Shown here piece by piece: positions 27,026-53,388 of a stretch of DNA of 64,000 nt (position 1 is the stretch's first letter; each line of letters begins with the position of its first letter). Where the stretch lies: positions 19,902,001 through 19,966,000 of the forward strand of contig OZ116698.1 of the NCBI GenBank assembly GCA_964199315.1, written 5' to 3'. The stretch is from Orbicella franksi (lineage: Eukaryota). Position numbers and translations under genes: made by a program. The notes beneath the pieces are model-generated. The model was given only the letters and a program-made list of their open reading frames with translations. It had not been told where the DNA came from and made no database searches.

Positions 27026-29466
27026 GGGCAGTCGTTGTTTATAAACTGCTCGGCAAAAAAAATCTTGAAATGAATTTTACATTTCGTCATCTAGACAAAA
27101 TAGATAAAATAAACTGTCCAAGAAATATTGAGAACATTTTTCAATCGCATATTGCAATGAATTTTGCCTTGCATTTCAAAATATAAATGAGTAATCTTAA
27201 AATCAGTAGAGCACGTTGATTGAAGTTTTCATTGGCTTGTGAATTATATCTACATAATGAACACTGGTTCCATATTGCAATTGTTTCCACTTTTCCTTTC
27301 GTTATCTGTGCTTTCGTGATCAGTTGTAGCAAAGTACGGTTTCTGTCCGTTCTCAGTTCTCCCGTGGAAAAAATAAAATTTTGGCAAGCATCTCAGTGGA
27401 AAACTGGACAAGCACTCATGTGTTTTAAGGCAAGGGTGATTTTCGCTGCTAGTCAATAAACGTTACATTTCACGTGGTTTTATTGGCGCAGAAATATGCT
27501 GTATCTACTGTATCTACTTTCTTATTAGTCCGTGCTAATAGCGATGTCTAATACATGACCCAGTTTTCAATTACAAGTAAAGAGGAGATTGCATAGTTAT
27601 TTATATTTTGAAATTGTTCCGATAACAAACTCTGTCAAAGATGAAAGAAGTGCTTCTGAAGAAATTATCGTGTTTTAATCTGAGCTGATTAATCGGGAAA
27701 AGAATTATTTATTCACTGTTGCAAAGTTTTTTCTTTTTTTCATTCCTTACACTAAATAAATACTTCGTACAACATCAGTGCACTGTACTGTGTCATAAAA
27801 ACCAGAATATCTTACTTATAATTATTAGTGGTATTATAACAAAGGACCATCACCTCGCAGAAATGACATTTGAAAGAAGCTAGGAAATTATGCATGGCCA
27901 AATCGTGATCGTCTGAATTGAGGTTTATTTAAGGCAAATCGCTTCCTGTTAAAACGGCAGCGTGCATTAAATTAACGGACACCGGAACTGGTAATTTATT
28001 GTCTCCGTAAAAGTAATGATAAAGAAAATGTATTAATAAAAAATAGACACATTTTAAGAACAGCATGGTAACGCTAACTTTTTCATTTCCTAAACCTCCT
28101 GAATTGAAAACACAGACGAACTAAATGTATTGTTGTTGTTTGAAATGGCTACCGTAAAGTCAAATTGGGCATTTTTTTGTTTCCTTTGAGATAAGCAACA
28201 TGGAAAGATGACGTTTTATCACATGGTAATTAGGCCATGATCTCATATCCAAACAGCCGCTGTCTCAGATTTCTTGATCTTTTCAGAACGAAGAAAGCAA
28301 CCAAAACTGGCTCAGAAGAAACCAAATCAACGAATCAATCATAAAAGTACTTAACAATGTACAAAAATTGTTGATAAAAAACATTCCAAATTTGGAAAAA
28401 AACATGCCTGGCTGTCAAAACGTGGTTCGAAAAGTTAAGCCGTTCTCAGTAAAATGAACGTTTCACTAAATTTTTTGTAGATAATTTTTTCAGATAAAGT
28501 TGCAAAGATCGGCATCTTTTAGCAAATGAAGATTCAGCGGATTTCGTTCATCCGGTGTGGGCTTATAATTAAGTCTCGGTGTTTGAGGGAGGGGGTAGGG
28601 AACGCTCTGGCAATGCAATCGCTTTGGAAACGCACGGAATACCGGTGCCAAGCGACTAAAAGCTAATTGAATGAGGAGACTATATATATAGGGGAGGGGG
28701 GAGTGGGGTTATAACCGGTGTCTTATAATATGTCTAGAGTGGTGGATCGACACGTTTTAGGGGAAATGATTTATTGTTCGGTCTAATGATAAAACCGACG
28801 TTTCGATGTCCTCATGACGCCATTGTCAAGGTCACAGCTTAAAATCAAGGAATACAAATAAAAAACAAACTGCTAACCGTTTTATACTTCTGATGATGTA
28901 TGTAGAAGCATATGAAACGTTAAGTTCTCAAATCAAGGTTTTTGTAGCATGCGTTGTTTTGTTACGTTTGTGACCGCAGTTTGTTTTTTATTTTTACTCA
29001 AGCTGAAATGGTCCAAGAATAAGAGTTTCTACGATAAGGAATACAAATTCTCCGTGTTAATGAAGATGTAAAATGAATTTACATAATGAGTGCGAGGCAA
29101 AATTATACAAATATTTTTGCCCGAATTGAGACGCTTTGCACGTTCCGAGTTGGTTTTAATTCTTCAATGAATAACATCTCGTGCGGTAAGCAATCGTACA
29201 GTAAATAGTAAATTATATTTCCGCACTATATAGAAAATCTGAGTTACTTTTTTTCAGGATCAGGTAGATTGGGTGCTGTACAGACCATTTATAAAGTTCC
29301 CGCTATGGCAGTAGATTACGCATGTAATAGTCCTTCTTACCTCTGCAGGCATCATTAGCATCACCGTCTGAAAACGTACATATTTGAAACAGTCTCGGCA
29401 AACTGCTAGAAACATCAAAGGGCTTTTGTTTGGTGTGAAACTGAAACTCACGCGATATCTATTTTA

Positions 29467-35857: not shown

Positions 35858-38800
35858 ATGATGGAATTAGAAGTGGAGCTCCTGGTCAAACTATTATTTA
35901 TTTTTGGATTATTGTTCTTACTTTGGGTAGGTCAAGCTGTTGTTATACGATTTGTATGTACAAGCAAAGAAGAATTATCAATAATCGCTTTTACACTTGG
36001 AGTATTAATATACAGCATGTATGGTAGCCAAATAGATTAAGCTGAAGCCTTTAAGATACTACAATTGAAATACCACACAGAGCATCATCATTATAATAAA
36101 TTTCATCAGCAGAATGTGGCTCTCAAACTATGCTTTGAACTGCAATTCTTTTTTGTGTTACAGGTGAAAGGCTAGCTGATATATGTAATGTGATAAGTAC
36201 ATCACTTCGAATTATTGGAACGATAAGATACATATATGCTATCGAGTCGTTTCTTTTGAATAGACATGGGACGATCGTAAATGTCATGGCAAATACAGGA
36301 TGATCAAAACTCATTAGCATGGGTTCAAGAGTTTTTGGTTCGCGTTGATAGATATACACAATGAATTGTTAACTACCCTGAGTGAAATAATTTTGTCTTT
36401 GTTTCCACTGGTTTGGCCGGTTAGATATGATCCTTCTAAGAGGATCTAAATCACACTGTCATGCCAAATACAGGATGATCAAAACGCATTAGCTTAAGCC
36501 CAAAATGTTTTGGTTCAGGACGCTAGACTACAAAATGAACAAATAACTACTTTGAGTAAGATATATTTTTTTTCATTGTTTCCTCTGGTTTGGTCGGTTA
36601 GGTATGGTCCTTCTGGAAAGATGTACAAGACAACAACGAATTTTATCCAGATGGCCTTGAACAATGTCCTCAAGAGACGTACACGATTCTTGAAAATGAC
36701 AGTAGCAATAGTAGCAGGATCAGGTGCTTATCCTGCCCTGTATGTCCACCAGGGGAGGAACCATCACCACCATGTGGTATAACATTGGTCAGAAGGGCAG
36801 CTGGTGAGTGTACTTCCTGCAGTCCAGGGACTTATTCAGATGAGACTGGCAGTACTGCCTGTAAGGTATGCTCTGTTTGTGACTCCAGGAAGATTATCAA
36901 CTCCTGTACTGCACAGAAAGACACAGAATGCAAGGACTGCCCATTGAGGCACTACGAAGACGATAATAAACGTACTTGCAAGCATTGTTCTTCCTGCTGT
37001 GGTAAAAATTATTCCGCTAAGTTGGAATGTTTCAAATCACAAAAGTGCAAGGGTAACTGCACCAGGAAAACAAACATTATGAAAAAACATTTTAGCACTA
37101 TTTTTAACAGGCTGGTTGCAAAACATATAAATGATCCCTACAACACTACCTCTATTTCAAATGGTAACAGCCTACCTAAAGAGGGTGAGGAAAATTCAAA
37201 GTTACTTGAAAGCGTTATAGATTACAAACAAGAAGACCTTACGCATTTGGAGACTAAACGCGACATCAGTGTTGAAGTTGCTGCACAAGAGGAGTACAAG
37301 GACAGCACCAACAGCCAAACAAACTTTGAGCTTCTGGAGATACCTGAGATCAATAAATACGTTCAAGAGGAGGCTGATATTTTGGGAAAGAAACAAGACC
37401 CTTCACCTACGAAAAACAGTACTGAACTCACTAATACCTTGGCTAATGAGGATAGAGAGCAGACTGCTCCTCAAACATTTCCAGACAAAGATTTCAACTC
37501 CGTTCAACCAACCGTATCTTCCCCAACTACAACAGAAAGTGAATTAGGACACCTGACACCACAAAGCCCAAAGACCCTGCCATCGGCAGCTCAAACTCAA
37601 TTAATAGTCCCAGGTTTCTTTCTAAGTAGCTTTGTTGGAACTATTGCTGCAGTCCTTTTGCTTGGTCTGATGGGACTATTAATATACCACGTATACAAGA
37701 AGCGGGTTAACAGAATGCCCAAGGGTTACGAGAAGTTAGGCAGCACATCAAAGCTTGAAGNNNNNNNNNNNNNNNNNNNNNNNNNNNNNNNNNNNNNNNN
37801 NNNNNNNNNNNNNNNNNNNNNNNNNNNNNNNNNNNNNNNNNNNNNNNNNNNNNNNNNNNNNNNNNNNNNNNNNNNNNNNNNNNNNNNNNNNNNNNNNNNN
37901 NNNNNNNNNNNATGAGGAAGTAGCAGATCCCATTAAAATAGTGCTCAATACACATATAGTGTAGAGCTGAGTATATGAGTAATAACGAAGAGGCAAGATT
38001 TGCTGTTACTCCGAGTTTCGTGCTTACGCACTCATCAGATAGTATTTAAATACTGTCTGATGAGTGCGTAAGCACGAAACTCGGAGTAACAGCAAATCTT
38101 GCCTCTTCGTTATTACTCATATAGATTTATAATTATATTTTATATTATAATATATATTTATACATTTATTATTATCATTATTATTATATATTATTATAAT
38201 AATAGTTATTATTATTATTTGGCTGTTGTTGTTGCAGATCTTAGCTGACACTTGTTATAGCATAGTATTCAATCCAAACACTCTGTACTTATTCAGTCCT
38301 AGTACTTTAGCACTAGCTGAATAGTGGATTAATTCAAGGCTTGAGAAACAGGATGAATTGAATGGGCTGCAGATGCCAATTTTGTATATCGTCTCTTATC
38401 AGCAGTTTATTTGTTATTTCTTTTTTAACTTCTTGTGTGTAAGTTGAGCTTTCACTCTCAAGCCAATTTAAAACAATTACTTGATGTCACTCACAAACAG
38501 GTGACAGCTGTGCAAAGAGTGCTCTTCAAGAGGTTGACTCTCTATAACGAAGATATTGAACAATATTTATTAATTCTTCTTATTTTGAATTTATCGAAAG
38601 ATGATTCAGCTGATGAGTTATCGGACAAAGAAGGCAGGAATGAACTTCGGGATGAAACTGCTGCTGCCACAGAATTGGAAGGTAATGAGGAAATCATAGC
38701 CTTTAAACATTATAGCTTTAGACAACGTGAATTAGCTTAGAGTACAGCCTGATAGTAGTTTGAAAACTAATTCTGGCCAGAATATACCCCTCACCCCCCG

Positions 38801-39508
38801 AGGAATACACCGTGTAGACTTAGCCATTTCAAACAAGGAGCATTGCATGTAGCTGCCTCTCAAGGAAACTCTCTCTTTGTCTGTCTACATTATTTATAAG
38901 GCTAAGTTAGTTATGAAAATTAATGTCGCAATAATATAGCTACCTTGGGAAAAAAAAAACGATTGCCTTTGACCAACAATCTACTCTTCGGAAGAGTACA
39001 CACAGCTGTATCTTCTCTTCGGAAGAGTAAATACAACTGTACAGTGGTAGCCAACTTTAACTTTTTGGCACTTGTTTAACCTCAACTTAAAATTTGTAAA
39101 AATTGTTTTGATTGTCATATTGAAATAGTCTAAGCTAGATATTGTTGTTACAGTTTGAACTAAACAAGAGAATTCTATTTACTGTACTTCTTGTGTTTAG
39201 GTCTGAACTTATCAGAAATACCTCCAGATCTAGAGGACATATTGGTAATGAAATTGGATGTGCCTCATGGAGCTGAAAGCCAGCAGTTTGGTTGGCAGAA
39301 AGTAGGCAGCGCGGCCGGAATTTCAAGATGTGAACTTAAATATTATGAACACTTGCGAGGAAAAAATGAAAGCCCTACAAAGTTGTTGTTAGATAAATTA
39401 GGAAGCCAAGGGAGAACAGTTTCGTATCTCATTGATGTTCTCCAGAAACCTAGAGTAGACCTTGATAATGTTGCTAAAACAATACGACACCGTGTGACAA
39501 GGATTTAA
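35858..39508 (+). CDS. TNF receptor superfamily member with three cysteine-rich domains, TM and death domain (TNFR-2a)
   Basis: Exons 35858-35926, 36602 to about 37763 (end hidden by N gap), 38601-38681, 39201-39508; CLSCPVCPPGEEPSPPCG resembles EDAR/TROY/XEDAR CRD1; TM FVGTIAAVLLLGLMGLLIY; DD GWQKVG...SPTKLLLDKLGSQGRTVSYLIDVL. Confidence 0.87.
37761..37910. other. Assembly gap (150 N)
   Basis: Run of N; hides the TNFR-2a exon 2 donor and the left end of the intronic insertion. Confidence 1.
37972..38123. repeat. 152-bp spacerless palindrome (76-bp arms, one mismatch)
   Basis: Arms 37972-38047 and 38048-38123 are reverse complements except 38040/38055; absent from the paralogous intron 50776-51181. 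Confidence 0.97.
38053..38092 (+). ncRNA. Minimal type I hammerhead ribozyme motif (Penelope/retrozyme-like)
   Basis: CTGT (stem I) - CTGATGA - GTGC GTAA GCAC (stem II, GNRA loop) - GAAA - CTCGGAG (short self-complementary stem III) - TA (GUA cleavage triplet, after 38088) - ACAG (stem I). Mirror copy on minus strand at 38003-38042 with one stem I mismatch. Confidence 0.8.
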
Positions 39509-41020
39509 AGGAGCTACGTCACGGTTTACGCATTTTGAAAAGTTAAACCTAAATATTTCATGTTCATGGATTGTAATCCGTGTTAATCTTCTGCATCCTT
39601 AAGCTACTTGTTCCTTTATGGTTTATTATTTTTTTATCTTAGTAAACAACTACTTTCAGGTTTTCTCCAATTCTAAGCTAATTTTCTACGTGGCCTAAAT
39701 AACTCAAAATGCCTCGACTGTGCTCCTTTAAATAGCTTAGTTATTTTTATAATCCTGTTTCTTTCATCTCGTGGTCAAATACAAAAATCGGCTCCTACCT
39801 CCATCATTCTCCTTGGTAATTCCCTTTGATTAAAGCAGCAAATCAGCAAAGTGATAATGTTGACACTAATGAAATGACGAAGGAGTAGCTACATTTTGAA
39901 ATGGAAAATTAAACTGATGATTATTTTTTGATAATGGTACTGGTACATTATGAAAAAGCAAGATATTGATCTAGTTTAACAGCTGAAAATTTTTATATTA
40001 AATTTGTACGCTTACCTTTTTCTTCAATTACCAAAAATGTAATATATGTCAAAAGTAATTATTGAGTATAACTTCGGTGTACTATGTTCGGGTATAGTGT
40101 TCATCAGGCATTCAGTAATTTTTAAACAGATACCAAAGTTTCAAACTTGCCTGTTTTGATAAAAATCCAATCTCTAGCCGTTAACTGTAAAATATAAAAT
40201 TCCCATTAAGATTTCTACTCGTCCAAAATTATCTTGGTAATCAATAAATTTGTTTGTAATTGCTGGTGTTTGGACTTTGTGGTTAACAGCATTTCACATG
40301 GCCGGTGGACGTTTAGGTTACGTCTTCTGCAAGCTATACCAGCTGCACCAAAGGTGTGCCCTGTCTGTTGGAACCCTAATCATACGAGATCGTTCTAAGA
40401 CAGTACGATGTTCATTTTGTACGCTTGTTACGACAAAGGCCTCCTTCTAAAGCAAGCTTAAAATAATGAAAACAAACGACCTGCCTTAAGCGACCACACA
40501 ATGGGCAAGCGACGATATTTCGTGTCCATGATCAGAACTCCACGCCTTATAAGTTCCAAACTCAGAATATGGGCTCTTGTGCTCGGATGCTTCAATTCCT
40601 TCAGCTAGCTGAACTGTGATTAGTAACCCTATAAATTAAGGTTCATTACCATTTTAAAATTTGCACGAGTTAAGAATGACTAAATATTGTGTGACCTTTA
40701 CTGGAGAACAGTTAACTCTCCTCGTTGTCTCTCAAAAAGGCGATTTCCTTATTTGGGCCACTGTAAAGAAGGACTGAGAATGCAATATATCATCAATTAC
40801 TCCATCTGGATCTGTGTCGGCGCAGTTGCAATGATGCCAGGGGGAATCCCCGAGCTAATAATCATGCAGAAATGTAAATTCAGCGGGGAAACTGGGTCCG
40901 CTTTCGATTCTCGGAATCGGTCGATGCGAACTCGAGTACATCTTGAAACAATTGTGTATACTTGGATAAAGATTCCATCGAACAATAATTGAAAACAACG
41001 CTTGATTACAAGCAGCCATC

Positions 41021-48877: not shown

Positions 48878-51800
48878 ATGATGGAATTAGAAGTGGAGCT
48901 CCTGGTCAAACTATTATTTATTTTTGGATTATTGTTCTTACTTTGGGTAGGTCAAGCTGTTGTTATACGGTTTGTATGTACAAGCAAAGCAGAATTATCA
49001 ATAATAGCTTTTACACTTGGAGTACATATGCAGCATGTATGGTAGCCAAATAGATTAAGCTGAAGCCTTTAAGATACTACAATAGAAATGCCACACAGAA
49101 CATCATATAATAAATTCCATCAGTAGAATGTGGCTCTCAAACTATGCTTTGAACTGCAATTCTTTGGTGATACAGGTGAAAGGCTACAATAGCTGATATG
49201 TAATGTGATAAGTACATCACTTCGAATTATTGGAACGATAAGATACATATATATTATGGAGTCGTTTCTTTTGAATAGACAAGGGGTGATAGTAAATGTC
49301 ATGGCTAATACAGGATGATCAAAACTCATTAGCATGGGTTCAAGAGTTTTTGGTTCGCGTTGATAGATACACACAATGAATTGTTAACTACCTAAAATAA
49401 TTTTGCCTTTGTTTCCACTGGTTTGGCCGGTTAGATATGGTCCTTCTAAGAGGATGTAAATCACACTGTCATGCCAAATACAGGATGATCAAAACGCATT
49501 GGCTTAAGCCCAAAATATTTTGGTTCAGGATGCTAGACTACAAAATGAACAAATAACTACGTCGAGTAAGATGTATTCTTGTTTTCATTGTTTCCTCTGG
49601 TTTGGTCGGTTAGGTATGGTCCTTCTGGAAAGATGTACAAGACAACAATGAATTTTATCCAGATGGCCTTGAGCAATGTCCTCAAGAGACGTACACGATT
49701 CTTGAAAATGACAGTAGCAACAGTAGCAGGATCAGGTGCTTATCCTGCCCTGTATGTCCACCAGGGGAGGAACCATCACCACCATGTGGTATAACATTGG
49801 TCAGAAGGGCAGCTGGTGAGTGTACTTCGTGCAGTCCAGGAACGTATTCAGATGAGACTGACAGTACTGCCTGCAAGGTATGCTCTGATTGTGGCTCCAG
49901 GAAGATTATCAACTCCTGTACTGCACAGAAAGACACAGAATGCAAGGACTGCCCATTGAGGCACTACGAAGACGATAATACACACACTTGCAAGCATTGT
50001 TCCTCCTGCTGTGGTAAAAATTATTCCGCTAAATTGGAATGTTTCAAATCACAAAAGTGCAAGGGTAACTGCACCAGGACAACAAACATTATGAAAAAAC
50101 ATTTTAGCACTTTTTTCAACAGGCTGGTTGCAAAACATATGAATGATCCCTACAACACTACTTCTATTTCAAATGGTAGCAGCCTACGTAAAGAGGGTGA
50201 GGAAAATTCAAAGTTACTTGAAAGCGTTCTAAATTACAAACAAGAAGACCTTACTCATTCGGAGACTAAACGCGACATCAGTGATAAAGTTGCTGCACAA
50301 GAGGAGTACAAGGAGAGCACCAACAGCCAAAGTAACTTTGAGCTTCTCGAGACACCTGAGATTAATAAATACGTTCAAGAGGAGGCTGATATTCTGGGAA
50401 AGAAGCAAGAGCCTTCACCTACGAAAAACAGTGTTGAACTCACTAACATCCTGGCTAATGAGGATAGAGAGCAGACTGCTCCTCAAACATTTCCAGACAA
50501 AGATTTCAACTCCGTTCAACCAACCGTATCTTCCCCAACTACAACAAAAAGTGAATTAGGACAACTGACATCACAAAGCCCAAAGACTCTTACATCAGCA
50601 GCTCAAACTCAATTAATAATGCCAGGTTCCTTTCTAAGCAGCTTTGTTGGAACTATTGCTGCAGTCCTTCTGCTTGGTCTGATAGGACTATTAATATACC
50701 TTGTATACAAGAAGTGTTTTAACAAAATGCGCAAGGGTTACAAGAAGTTAAGCAGCACATCAAAGCTTGAAGAAGGTAAGAAGAAATATTTATATTAAAT
50801 ATAATTATATTTAATATTATTACATATACTTAAATATATGTTTATTATTACGATTATTATATATAATAATAATAATTAACAAGTACTTAAACACCAGCTG
50901 AAGAATTTAATTCAAGGTTTGAGAAACAGGATGAATTGAATGGGCTGCGGATGCCCAATTTAGTATATCGTCTCTTATCAGCAGTTTACTTGTTATTTCT
51001 TTTTTAACTTCTTATGTGTAAGTTGAGTTTCCACTCTCAAGCCAGTTTGAAACAATTACTTGATGTCACTGACAAACAGGTGACAGCTGTGCCAAGAGTG
51101 CTCTTCAAGAGGTTGACTCTCTATAACGGATACACTTTCATTCAACAATATTAATTCTTCTTAATTTGAATTTATCGAAAGATGATTCATGTGATGAGTT
51201 ATTAGACAAAGAAGGCAGGAATGAACTCAGTCAGGATGAAACTGCTGCTGCCACAGTATTAGAAGGTAATAAGGAAATCATATCCTTCGAACATTATAGC
51301 TTTAGCAACGTGAATTAGCTTAGAGTAGCCGAAAGATAATACAGACCAGAATACACCCCTTCCCCCGAGGAATACAGCTTGTAGCCTAAACATGTCAAAC
51401 GGGGAGCATTACATGTAGCTTCATCTCAAGGAAACTCTCTCTTTGTCTGTCTGCATTATTTTTAAGGCTGAATTAGTGAAAATTAATTTTCCAATAATAT
51501 AACTACCTTTGAAAAAATCGATTGCCTTTGACTAACAATCTGCTCTTCGGAAGAGTACATGCAGTTGTACAGCGGTAACCAACTTTAGTTTATTGGCACT
51601 TGTTTAACGTCAACTTAAACTTATTAAAAAATTGTTTTGAGTGTCATATTGAAATAGGCTAAGCTAGATGTTGTTGTTACATTTTGAACTAAACAAGAGA
51701 ACTCTATTTAATGTACTTTTTGTTTTTAGATCTCAACTTATCACAAATACCTCCAGACCTAGAGGACATATTGGTAATGAAACTGGATGTGCCTCATGGA

Positions 51801-52037
51801 GCTGAAAGCCAGCAGTTTGGTTGGCAGAAAGTAGGCAACGCCGCCGGAATTTCAAGATGTGAACTTAAATATTATGAACACTTGGGCGGAAAAAATCGAA
51901 GCCCTACGAAGTTATTGCTGGAGAAATTAGGAAGCCAAGGGAGAACAATTTCGTACCTCATTGATGTTCTCCAGAAACCTAGAGTAGAACTTGGTAATGT
52001 TGCTAAAACAATACGACACCGTGTTTCAAGAATTTAA
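48878..52037 (+). CDS. TNFR-2b, tandem duplicate of TNFR-2a (3 CRDs, TM, death domain)
   Basis: Exons 48878-48946, 49614-50775, 51182-51265, 51730-52037, phases 0/1/1, open frame; about 35 amino-acid differences from TNFR-2a in the large exon. Confidence 0.88.
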
Positions 52038-53388
52038 AGGAGCTAAGTCACGGTGTACGCATTTTGAAAGGCCTAAATGTTTCAAGTTCGTGGATTGTAA
52101 TCCGTGTTAATCTTCTGCATCCTTAAGCATACTTGATCCTTCATAGTCTATTAATGTGTCTCTGGTGTTTTTCTCTATCATAGTAAACTACTATTTTCAG
52201 GTTTTCTCCAATTCTAAGCTAATTTTCTACGTGGCCAAACTAACTCAAAATGCCTCAACTAGGCTCCTTTAAATAGCTTAGTTTTTTTTATAATTCTGTT
52301 TGTTTCGTCTCTTGGTCAAATACGAAAAATCGGCTCCTACCTCCATCATTTTCCTTGGTAATTCCCTGTGATTACAGCAGCAATTCAGCAAAGTAATAAT
52401 GTTGACACTAGTCTAATGAAATAACGAAGGAGTAGCTACATTTAGAAATGGGAAATTTAACTGATGATTAGTTTTTGATAATGGTACTGGTACATCATGA
52501 AAAAGCAAGATACTGATCTAGTCTAACAGCTGTAAAATTTTATATTAAATTTGTACGCTTGCTTTTTTCGTCAATTACCAAAAATGTAATATATGTCAAC
52601 AGTAATTATTGAGAATAACTTCGGTGTACTGTGTTCTGGTATAGTGTTCATCAGGCATTCAGTAATTTTTAAACAGATACAAAGTTTCAAACTTGCCTGT
52701 TTTGATACAAATCCAATCTCTAGCTGTTAACTGTAAAATATAAAATTCCCATTAAGAGTTCTACTCTTCCAACTTTATCTTGGTGATCAATAAATTTGTT
52801 TGTAATTGCTGGTGTTTGGACTTTGTGGTTAACAGCATTTCACATGGCCGGTGGACGTTTAGGTTACGTCTTCTGCTAGCTATACCAGCTGCACCAAAGG
52901 TGTGTCCCGTCTGTTGGAACCCTAATCATACGAGATCCTTCTAAGACAGTAAGATGTTCATTTTGTACACTTGTTATGAGAAAGGCTTCCTTCTAAAGGA
53001 AGCTTGAAATAATGAAAACAAACGACCTGCCTTAAGCGACCACACAATGGGCAAGCGACGATATTTCGTGTCCATGATCAGAACTCCATGCCTTATAAGT
53101 TCCAAACTCAGAACATGGGCTCTTGTGCTCGGATGCTTCCTTCAGCTAGCTGAACTGTGATTAGTAATCCTATAAATTAAGGTTCATTACCATTTTAAAA
53201 TTTGCACAAGTTAAGAACTGAATGACTAAATATTGCGTGACCTTTACTGGAGAACAGTTTTAAACTCTCCTCGCCGTCTCTCAAAAGGGCGATTTCCTTA
53301 TTTGGGCCACTGTAAAGAGGGACTGAGAATGCAATATATCATCAATTACTCCATCTGCATCTGTATCGGCGCAGTTGCTAGATGCCAG

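Follow-up and report, generated by a model that had tools for sequence, protein, structure and literature searches.

Among Penelope-like elements (PLEs), the Hydra clade comprises short members (<3 kb), mostly from cnidarians, that target (TA)n and carry canonical hammerhead ribozymes (Craig et al. 2021, PMC8557442). PLE insertions are 5'-truncated partial tandems, often adjoining an inverted 5'-truncated copy and bearing a one-sided tail, and their presence breaks assemblies (PMC8557442). Pairs of hammerheads on opposite strands, 100–700 bp apart, have been reported, and hammerheads that function as dimers are recognized by an almost palindromic helix III, too short to form a hairpin (Cervera and de la Pena 2014, PMC4209133). 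In the case of the Poseidon PLE of Anolis carolinensis, the purified protein cuts and extends both target strands and prefers AT-rich DNA (Frangieh et al. 2024, PMC11167929). Two sites within the RNA serve as starts for reverse transcription, and the distance between them corresponds to the genomic tail (PMC11167929). The non-LTR (long terminal repeat) retrozymes of animals have recently been proposed to derive from PLE pseudo-LTRs (bioRxiv 10.64898/2026.07.22.740005). Here we analyze a palindrome at 37972–38123 of a 64,000-nt stretch of the genome of Orbicella franksi (assembly GCA_964199315.1, contig OZ116698.1, positions 19,902,001 to 19,966,000 of the forward strand). This whole stretch is called the window, and positions are counted from its first letter. 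The palindrome lies in an intron of a gene encoding a tumor necrosis factor receptor (TNFR)-type protein, TNFR-2a, and had been described in an earlier note, made from the letters alone, as two back-to-back hammerhead cores. In our analysis, it very probably marks the internal junction of a Hydra-clade PLE insertion that is short and either complete or almost so, in AT-rich intron DNA.

An inverted-repeat search returned the two segments 37972–38047 and 38048–38123, that is, arms of 76 nt that are 99% complementary with 0 nt of spacer, which agrees with the 76-bp arms, no spacer, and single mismatch given in the earlier note. Both the hairpin z-score (−30.5) and the E values of the covariance-model matches (table 1) show that the palindrome is far beyond chance. 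The only mismatch opposes 38040 (T) to 38055 (G), which becomes a G·U wobble in plus-strand RNA, and every other genomic copy has a C at the position of 38040. The match to the PLE repeat unit described below extends to 78 nt per arm once the shared central TTAA is counted. Each arm is an element 3' end (the pseudo-LTR hammerhead plus 35 nt), the two being joined head to head with their 3' termini outward. Unique AT-rich intron directly follows the outer end of the right arm. On the other side, minus-strand similarity to the element runs on past the left arm through 37912–37971, up to the edge of an N run. Because element matches extend beyond the arms to this gap edge, the 152 bp originally described are the inner part of a larger insertion. 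Position 37972 is the boundary of the 76-nt arm and not the place where similarity stops, since the latter continues on the minus strand to 37912. Similarly, the gap said to adjoin the palindrome does exist (37761–37911), but the palindrome is not at its edge, 60 nt lying between the two.

The family to which the arms belong is abundant. In the 497-Mb genome of the coral itself, we counted at least 45 copies of the right arm at 100% identity, and 200 matches to a 35-nt hammerhead pattern (105 forward and 95 reverse), against 0 in a reversed control; in 99 of the first 100 matches listed, the hammerhead pattern is letter-for-letter identical. At one locus (L031) we found the parent, in which an arm, 123 nt, an open reading frame (ORF) of 712 aa, 175 nt, and a second arm succeed one another with a period of 2513 bp, an inverted copy of the ORF lying upstream. 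Unit coordinates given hereafter refer to L031:6091–8603, in which the ORF occupies L031:6214–8352. The arms of the palindrome correspond to the end of this unit. The copy count and the search for a parent that had been suggested earlier have thus both given an answer, and the attribution of the motifs to a PLE is upheld.

Translation of the ORF reveals YRDDG and neighboring blocks resembling those of reverse transcriptase (RT), RWK near the N-terminus, ADKT, and a CxCX5C linker, followed at the C-terminus by VIY...YIGLTEG (GIY-YIG), with no cysteines within the core and with CxxC and CxH near the end. It is by these motifs that the Hydra clade is diagnosed (PMC8557442, section 11). In an alignment of 17 sequences, built from homologues of 50–85% identity, R37 and W38, K126, C574/C576/C582, C672/C675, and C701/H703 are invariant, and Pfam recognizes a GIY-YIG domain in the relatives P0012 (E 1e-5) and P0044 (E 0.006). 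The structural traits of the clade are also present, namely partial-tandem pseudo-LTRs, a neighboring 5'-truncated copy in inverted orientation, a tail on one side only, and (TA)n targets; further members of the family adjoin TA, CATA, or TGTA microsatellites. Placed by these diagnostic motifs, the arms are assigned to a Hydra-clade PLE with a putative RT and GIY-YIG endonuclease.

Some further observations concern the element as a whole. Sequence searches of the PDB with the ORF and with the 17-sequence profile returned nothing meaningful. For this clade, Pfam-A yields no RT match, and precomputed annotations list only PF26215 (HTH_animal, weak) and PF28514. Relatives of the ORF are numerous in marine metagenome and metatranscriptome assemblies (>3,000 proteins, 488 confirmed loci), where many contigs measure 2.3–2.9 kb, that is, about one unit. 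One element copy adjoins a 368-aa ORF with a clear RVT_1 match (E 1.6e-19) at L033:4826–5932 on the minus strand (C1:4010825–4011931), which belongs to a different retroelement. Contigs from a polyA RNA run cross the tandem-unit boundary and the region from the 3' untranslated region (UTR) to the hammerhead (37912–38000 and 38046–38119). This suggests that the family is transcribed as more-than-unit RNAs, carry-over of DNA being possible.

Read on the plus strand, the right arm is composed of stem I CUGU, CUGAUGA, GUGC-GUAA-GCAC, GAAA, CUCGGAG, UA, and ACAG; the motif recurs in the left arm on the minus strand, with stem I containing the G-to-A change. All elements of the type I core are found in the right arm (C3-U-G-A-N-G-A, G12-A-A, A15.1-U16.1, and H17), and cleavage is predicted at 38088|38089 on the plus strand. 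The 4-bp stem I (CTGT/ACAG) and the 5' end at 38089 expected in the earlier note agree with this. For comparison, we collected 86 loci encoding relatives of the ORF (43–85% identity) from other assemblies and metagenomes. A simple descriptor scan, which itself required three pairs each in helices I and II, found a hammerhead on the ORF strand, in a UTR, in 70 of these 86 foreign loci, with 5 matches on the opposite strand and 0–1 in reversed or complemented controls. The same core is shared by 67 distinct motifs, of which 66 are foreign and one is that of the window, H17 being A, U, or C, as G was barred by the design of the scan.

These motifs provide comparative evidence for each helix. Across the 67, the inner positions of helix I display all four Watson–Crick pair types, helix II covaries, and helix III is self-complementary at 94.7% of symmetric positions, versus 44% after shuffling. 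In an alignment of 33 foreign sequences, 87.9% of paired cells hold, versus 58.1% when shuffled and at most 44% with partners slid; the covariation score is 0.78 (control, 0.19), and both sides have changed in 139 cells, versus 44. The pairs that the descriptor did not impose (4-47, 35-40, 34-41, and 33-42) hold in 31–33 of the 33 sequences. A covariance model built from foreign PLE hammerheads only (model R1) matches both arms of the palindrome (table 1). Helix III is near-palindromic and too short to close as a hairpin, which is the basis for assigning the motif to the dimer type, and cofolding of two copies gives an extended helix III of that type. Motif and covariation show it to be the conserved dimer-type hammerhead of this PLE clade, with predicted cleavage, and bear out the proposal, made from the window alone, that the motifs are type I hammerheads of minimal size whose helix III is short and close to palindromic.

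Positions 10.1/11.1 are U/U in roughly half of the related hammerheads, instead of the usually conserved G-C, which the window family retains. Elsewhere in the window, a third and weak R1 match at 28883–28928 (+) (15.7 bits, E 0.045) has CUGAUGA and GAAAC and no convincing helix I, and is probably due to chance. No gathering-level Rfam match was found anywhere in the window; those to mir-2733 and other microRNA-hairpin models are far below gathering and were read as hairpin shape, not homology.

The insertion can be dated by means of the tandem paralog of the host gene. TNFR-2a (36500–40500) and TNFR-2b (49510–53046) are 94% identical in the exon and 88% in the intron and downstream. The paralog has ~24 nt (50776–50800) where TNFR-2a holds the N run and the element, which places the insertion point at ~50796–50800 of the paralog, an AT-rich site 20–24 nt downstream of the GT donor (50776). 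As the paralogous intron is devoid of it, the insertion is recent; moreover, the insert shows 1 difference in ~212 nt with respect to a natural full copy, whereas the TNFR paralogs differ by 6–12%, so it must be much younger than the gene duplication. This agrees with the earlier claim that the insertion postdates the TNFR-2a/TNFR-2b split. The plus-strand core was also correctly placed in the sense pre-mRNA, with the transmembrane exon before it and the Death-domain-like exon after it, with the reservation that the Death-domain match is below the Pfam cut-off (table 1). TNFR-2a further differs from TNFR-2b by ~65 extra nt at 38235–38300.

Table 1. Features of the TNFR-2a intron insertion and its surroundings (window coordinates), and predicted folding energies
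Feature	Position	Strand	Evidence or value
Host exon: TNFR-type cysteine-rich region, long linker, transmembrane segment	36785..37760	+	TNFR_c6 E 9e-6, 26.4 bits, just under Pfam cut-off
N run (assembly gap or masked stretch)	37761..37911	.	Hides last bases of the exon, splice donor, and outer end of the element tail
One-sided tail: next PLE unit, positions 60 to 1 (5' UTR start), cut by the gap	37912..37971	-	Matches unit 60-1 at 100%; tandem copies continue likewise
Left arm: last 76 nt of the PLE unit, hammerhead 38045-38000, one change (38040)	37972..38047	-	Model R1 47.1 bits, E 1e-11
Central TTAA: 4-nt palindromic microhomology common to both arms, head-to-head junction (unit ~2436)	38046..38049	.	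Arm matches overlap by 4 nt; canonical upstream sequence diverges from there
Right arm: PLE unit 2438-2513, ends exactly at the element 3' terminus, hammerhead 38050-38095	38048..38123	+	Model R1 54.4 bits, E 7e-14
Right-arm hammerhead parts	core 38057-38063, stem II 38064-38075, GAAA 38076-38079, U-A 38087-38088	+	Motif read
AT-rich intron DNA, insertion target	38124..38234	.	Matches paralog 50800-50876
Downstream host exon, Death-domain-like	39191..39505	+	PF00531 E 0.0018, 18.8 bits, cut-off 22.6
Predicted fold, whole stretch as 74-bp hairpin			-134.7 kcal/mol
Predicted best fold keeping the ribozyme			-58.8 kcal/mol
Predicted monomer ribozyme fold			-5.8 kcal/mol
Predicted minimum-energy fold of the arm itself			-11.9 kcal/mol

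The same plan was found at 11 other mapped loci (the tight mini-insertions L007, L008, L017, L030, and L152–L158), with inverted arms of 66–154 nt and a 67–72-nt tail (unit 1 to ~70) on one side only. The flanks differ from one locus to another, and no N lies near any of these 11 loci. In all 12 tight inverted loci, window included, there is an outer terminus at unit 2512–2513, and the position of the head-to-head junction varies. Inverted hammerhead pairs 52–91 bp apart occur at at least nine loci among the first 100 matches listed, an unbiased set, the window being among them; the window locus is not special, being one of at least nine tight palindromes. This recurrence fits the published anatomy of PLE insertions (PMC8557442), and the earlier statement that inverted duplication is a normal form of PLE insertion holds. 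At four analogous loci, the tail is on the same side as in the window and ends at unit 68–72. By analogy with these sister loci, the window tail should end ~10 nt inside the N run, for a total insertion of ~225 bp, and a full-length inverted copy hidden in the gap appears less likely.

The 5' boundaries of the copies are not evenly distributed. We recorded 46 distinct boundaries from own-genome loci L001–L035, L042–L071, and L152–L158, a set enriched by seven loci chosen for tight spacing. Thirteen of the 46 fall at unit 2431–2437, 10–16 nt upstream of the hammerhead core, and the others are scattered singly. None of the 46 lies at the predicted cleavage site (unit 2479), where a boundary would be expected if the cleaved RNA were the template. 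The pile-up may reflect a transcription start or a preferred RT stop.

These features can be accommodated in a scenario in which both target strands would be used. The element endonuclease would cut both strands, and both target 3' ends would prime reverse transcription at one of two internal RNA sites, either the unit end or ~70 nt into the next unit. Both cDNAs would then run to a preferred stop at unit 2431–2437, just 5' of the hammerhead, and would be joined via the short microhomology TTAA. We infer that dual priming of this kind would leave the observed anatomy, namely 3' ends pointing outward, two alternative outer ends, AT-rich or microsatellite flanks, and a microhomology junction. 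Once transcribed as part of the host pre-mRNA, the insert would most likely fold as a 74-bp intronic hairpin and then be spliced out. A more speculative variant, which we hold to be unlikely although worth considering, is that the pile-up at unit 2431–2437 corresponds to the 5' end of the RNA template (transcription start), the ribozyme coming first in the transcript; the ~225-bp mini-insertions would in that case be complete copies of a ~150-nt RNA (hammerhead plus tail) primed by both target strands. If this were true, mini-units could be raw material for non-autonomous, retrozyme-like elements, and mini-insertions as a class could be genome-wide sources of hairpin RNA against the PLE.

Several points weigh against the interpretation of the palindrome as the junction of a Hydra-clade PLE insertion. 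First, the left outer end lies within the N run, and the size of the insertion, either ~225 bp or much longer, is given by analogy only. Second, the dual-priming mechanism is borrowed from in vitro work on an element of another clade, Poseidon. Third, Pfam searches with the 712-aa ORF, whole and in pieces, identified no RT domain and gave nothing significant, so that the RT assignment relies on motifs recognized by eye and on what has been published about the clade. Fourth, the Rfam hammerhead scan recommended in the earlier note gave a divided answer, as the Rfam models remain under threshold (best, Hammerhead_3 with 20.4–23.1 bits for a gathering score of 48.5) whereas the clade-specific R1 model matches both arms. 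Lastly, no contig from four public runs (Logan contigs) bridges the center with at least 31 nt on each side, the AT-rich flank being skipped as a repeat, and the junction at this particular locus is consequently without independent confirmation.

Other explanations fare less well. The one that survives best, improbable as it is, states that the host uses the 74-bp hairpin as double-stranded RNA, either for small RNAs against the PLE or for editing, with side effects on TNFR-2a splicing. The hairpin is indeed perfect save one G·U wobble and lies in a transcribed intron (RNA run contigs of the flanking intron exist), within ~100 nt of the 5' splice site, and with at least nine similar palindromes among the first 100 matches listed the family could feed such a pathway. 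However, any inverted transposon junction would share this property, so that nothing suggests selection at this locus, and the insertion is very young.

A fold-back assembly artefact at a contig end is less probable still. This reading draws on the N run lying 60 nt away, on the known tendency of PLE structures to disturb assemblies (PMC8557442), and on the fact that no public contig spans the center of the locus. Yet the palindrome stops short of the contig end, the intervening 60 nt being the expected tail of the element, and 11 further mapped loci, which have other flanks and are free of N, display this architecture as well. Moreover, the junction sequence (38033–38075) is contained in short contigs of another organism label and of an RNA run, and the private substitution of the left arm is not expected of a fold-back copy of the right arm.

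Slightly less likely again, at a very low level, is the self-cleavage of TNFR-2a pre-mRNA by the plus-strand hammerhead, which would shift the output of the gene toward a receptor without a death domain. Although the core is intact, in sense orientation, and located between the transmembrane and Death-like exons, and although the hammerhead is conserved evolutionarily within PLEs, the order of the arms is unfavorable: in the plus-strand transcript, the antisense arm comes first and would pair with the ribozyme arm, the resulting hairpin being predicted at −134.7 kcal/mol versus −58.8 kcal/mol for the best fold that keeps the ribozyme. The monomer ribozyme fold (−5.8 kcal/mol) is even predicted to be weaker than the fold adopted by the arm itself (−11.9 kcal/mol). 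In addition, helix III is of the dimer type, and as the plus-strand transcript carries a single sense ribozyme, no dimer can form in cis. In vitro, metazoan PLE hammerheads are inactive as single motifs (PMC4209133), and that of the Anolis PLE depends on the protein of the element and is not required for insertion (PMC11167929); where cleavage by PLE hammerheads has been published, it is weak and occurs in dimers or with protein (PMC4209133, PMC11167929). Finally, a cut in the intron would not by itself yield a truncated translatable mRNA.

Since the hairpin energy swamps that of the ribozyme fold, ribozyme control of the receptor is unsupported, and these predicted energetics leave essentially masking alone, not cleavage. 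Of the two outcomes envisaged in the earlier note, masking of the core by the hairpin thus agrees with the predictions, whereas intronic cleavage in favor of a receptor without death domain does not. The idea that TNFR-2a would be regulated differently from TNFR-2b is likewise unsupported, the locus being one of at least nine tight palindromes. According to these folds, the ribozyme would be a passenger for which no function in the gene has been demonstrated, almost certainly locked in the hairpin.

The hypothesis of a miniature inverted-repeat transposable element with 76-bp terminal inverted repeats, which the perfect inverted repeat, the outer end TATA, the AT-rich flanks, and the minus-then-plus arm pairs a few kb apart might evoke, has a negligible probability and, like a DNA-transposon identity in general, was discarded because co-linearity ties the arms to the 3' UTR and tandem-unit boundary of a retroelement with putative RT and GIY-YIG, long inverted pairs are two 5'-truncated ORF copies head to head, junction positions differ among loci, and no transposase was found.

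The palindrome is an ordinary young transposon scar in a TNFR intron, in which the retroelement, the ribozyme, and the inverted arrangement are all of a known kind, and for which a regulatory role is unsupported. It is of little consequence for the TNF-receptor gene. Its value lies rather in providing a clean and dated example of Hydra-clade PLE integration, with exact outer termini, a ~70-nt one-sided tail, a microhomology junction, and an empty paralogous site. Together with the sister loci, it brings genomic support, in a second PLE clade, for priming on both strands and for two internal RT start sites; the one-sided ~70-nt tail and the hot spot of 5' boundaries upstream of the ribozyme are of modest interest for the PLE mechanism. 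Annotators should be aware that default Pfam and Rfam searches miss this abundant element and its ribozyme, and that the inverted junctions of the element coincide with assembly gaps.

The arrangement of the two arms is reminiscent of LINE-1 twin priming, in which cDNAs primed on either side of the break are joined head to head by microhomology, their 3' ends facing outward. The two parts of a LINE-1 twin-priming product come from different segments of one RNA and form no palindrome, whereas both arms here copy the same segment. Animal non-LTR retrozymes have in common with this insert that they are short non-coding DNAs with a type I hammerhead. However, they form head-to-tail tandem repeats giving circular RNAs, while the window holds one head-to-head pair with one sense ribozyme per strand; a retrozyme identity was rejected because the two copies are inverted rather than in tandem.

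The closest relatives are to be found among PLEs. As in other Hydra-clade elements, targets are (TA)n-like, the hammerhead lies in the pseudo-LTR, insertions are tandem or inverted, and the host is a cnidarian. The tail of ~70 nt is about twice as long as the 30–40 bp quoted for PLEs in general (PMC8557442). With the metazoan PLE hammerheads (PMC4209133), this family shares type I topology, a location in flanking repeats, a short near-palindromic helix III, and close pairs on opposite strands, as well as near-identical copies in a genome under ongoing invasion; those hammerheads, though, have a long helix II with a bulged base, in place of which we find a canonical helix of 4 bp, with a GNRA loop and G10.1-C11.1. 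Lastly, the in vitro findings on Poseidon (priming on both strands, two starts, and AT-rich targets) fit the anatomy described here, which is known from sequence alone. The two systems differ in clade and in the location of the ribozyme, since the Poseidon hammerhead overlaps the start of the ORF, whereas the present one occupies the 3' UTR end, 35 nt upstream of the unit boundary.

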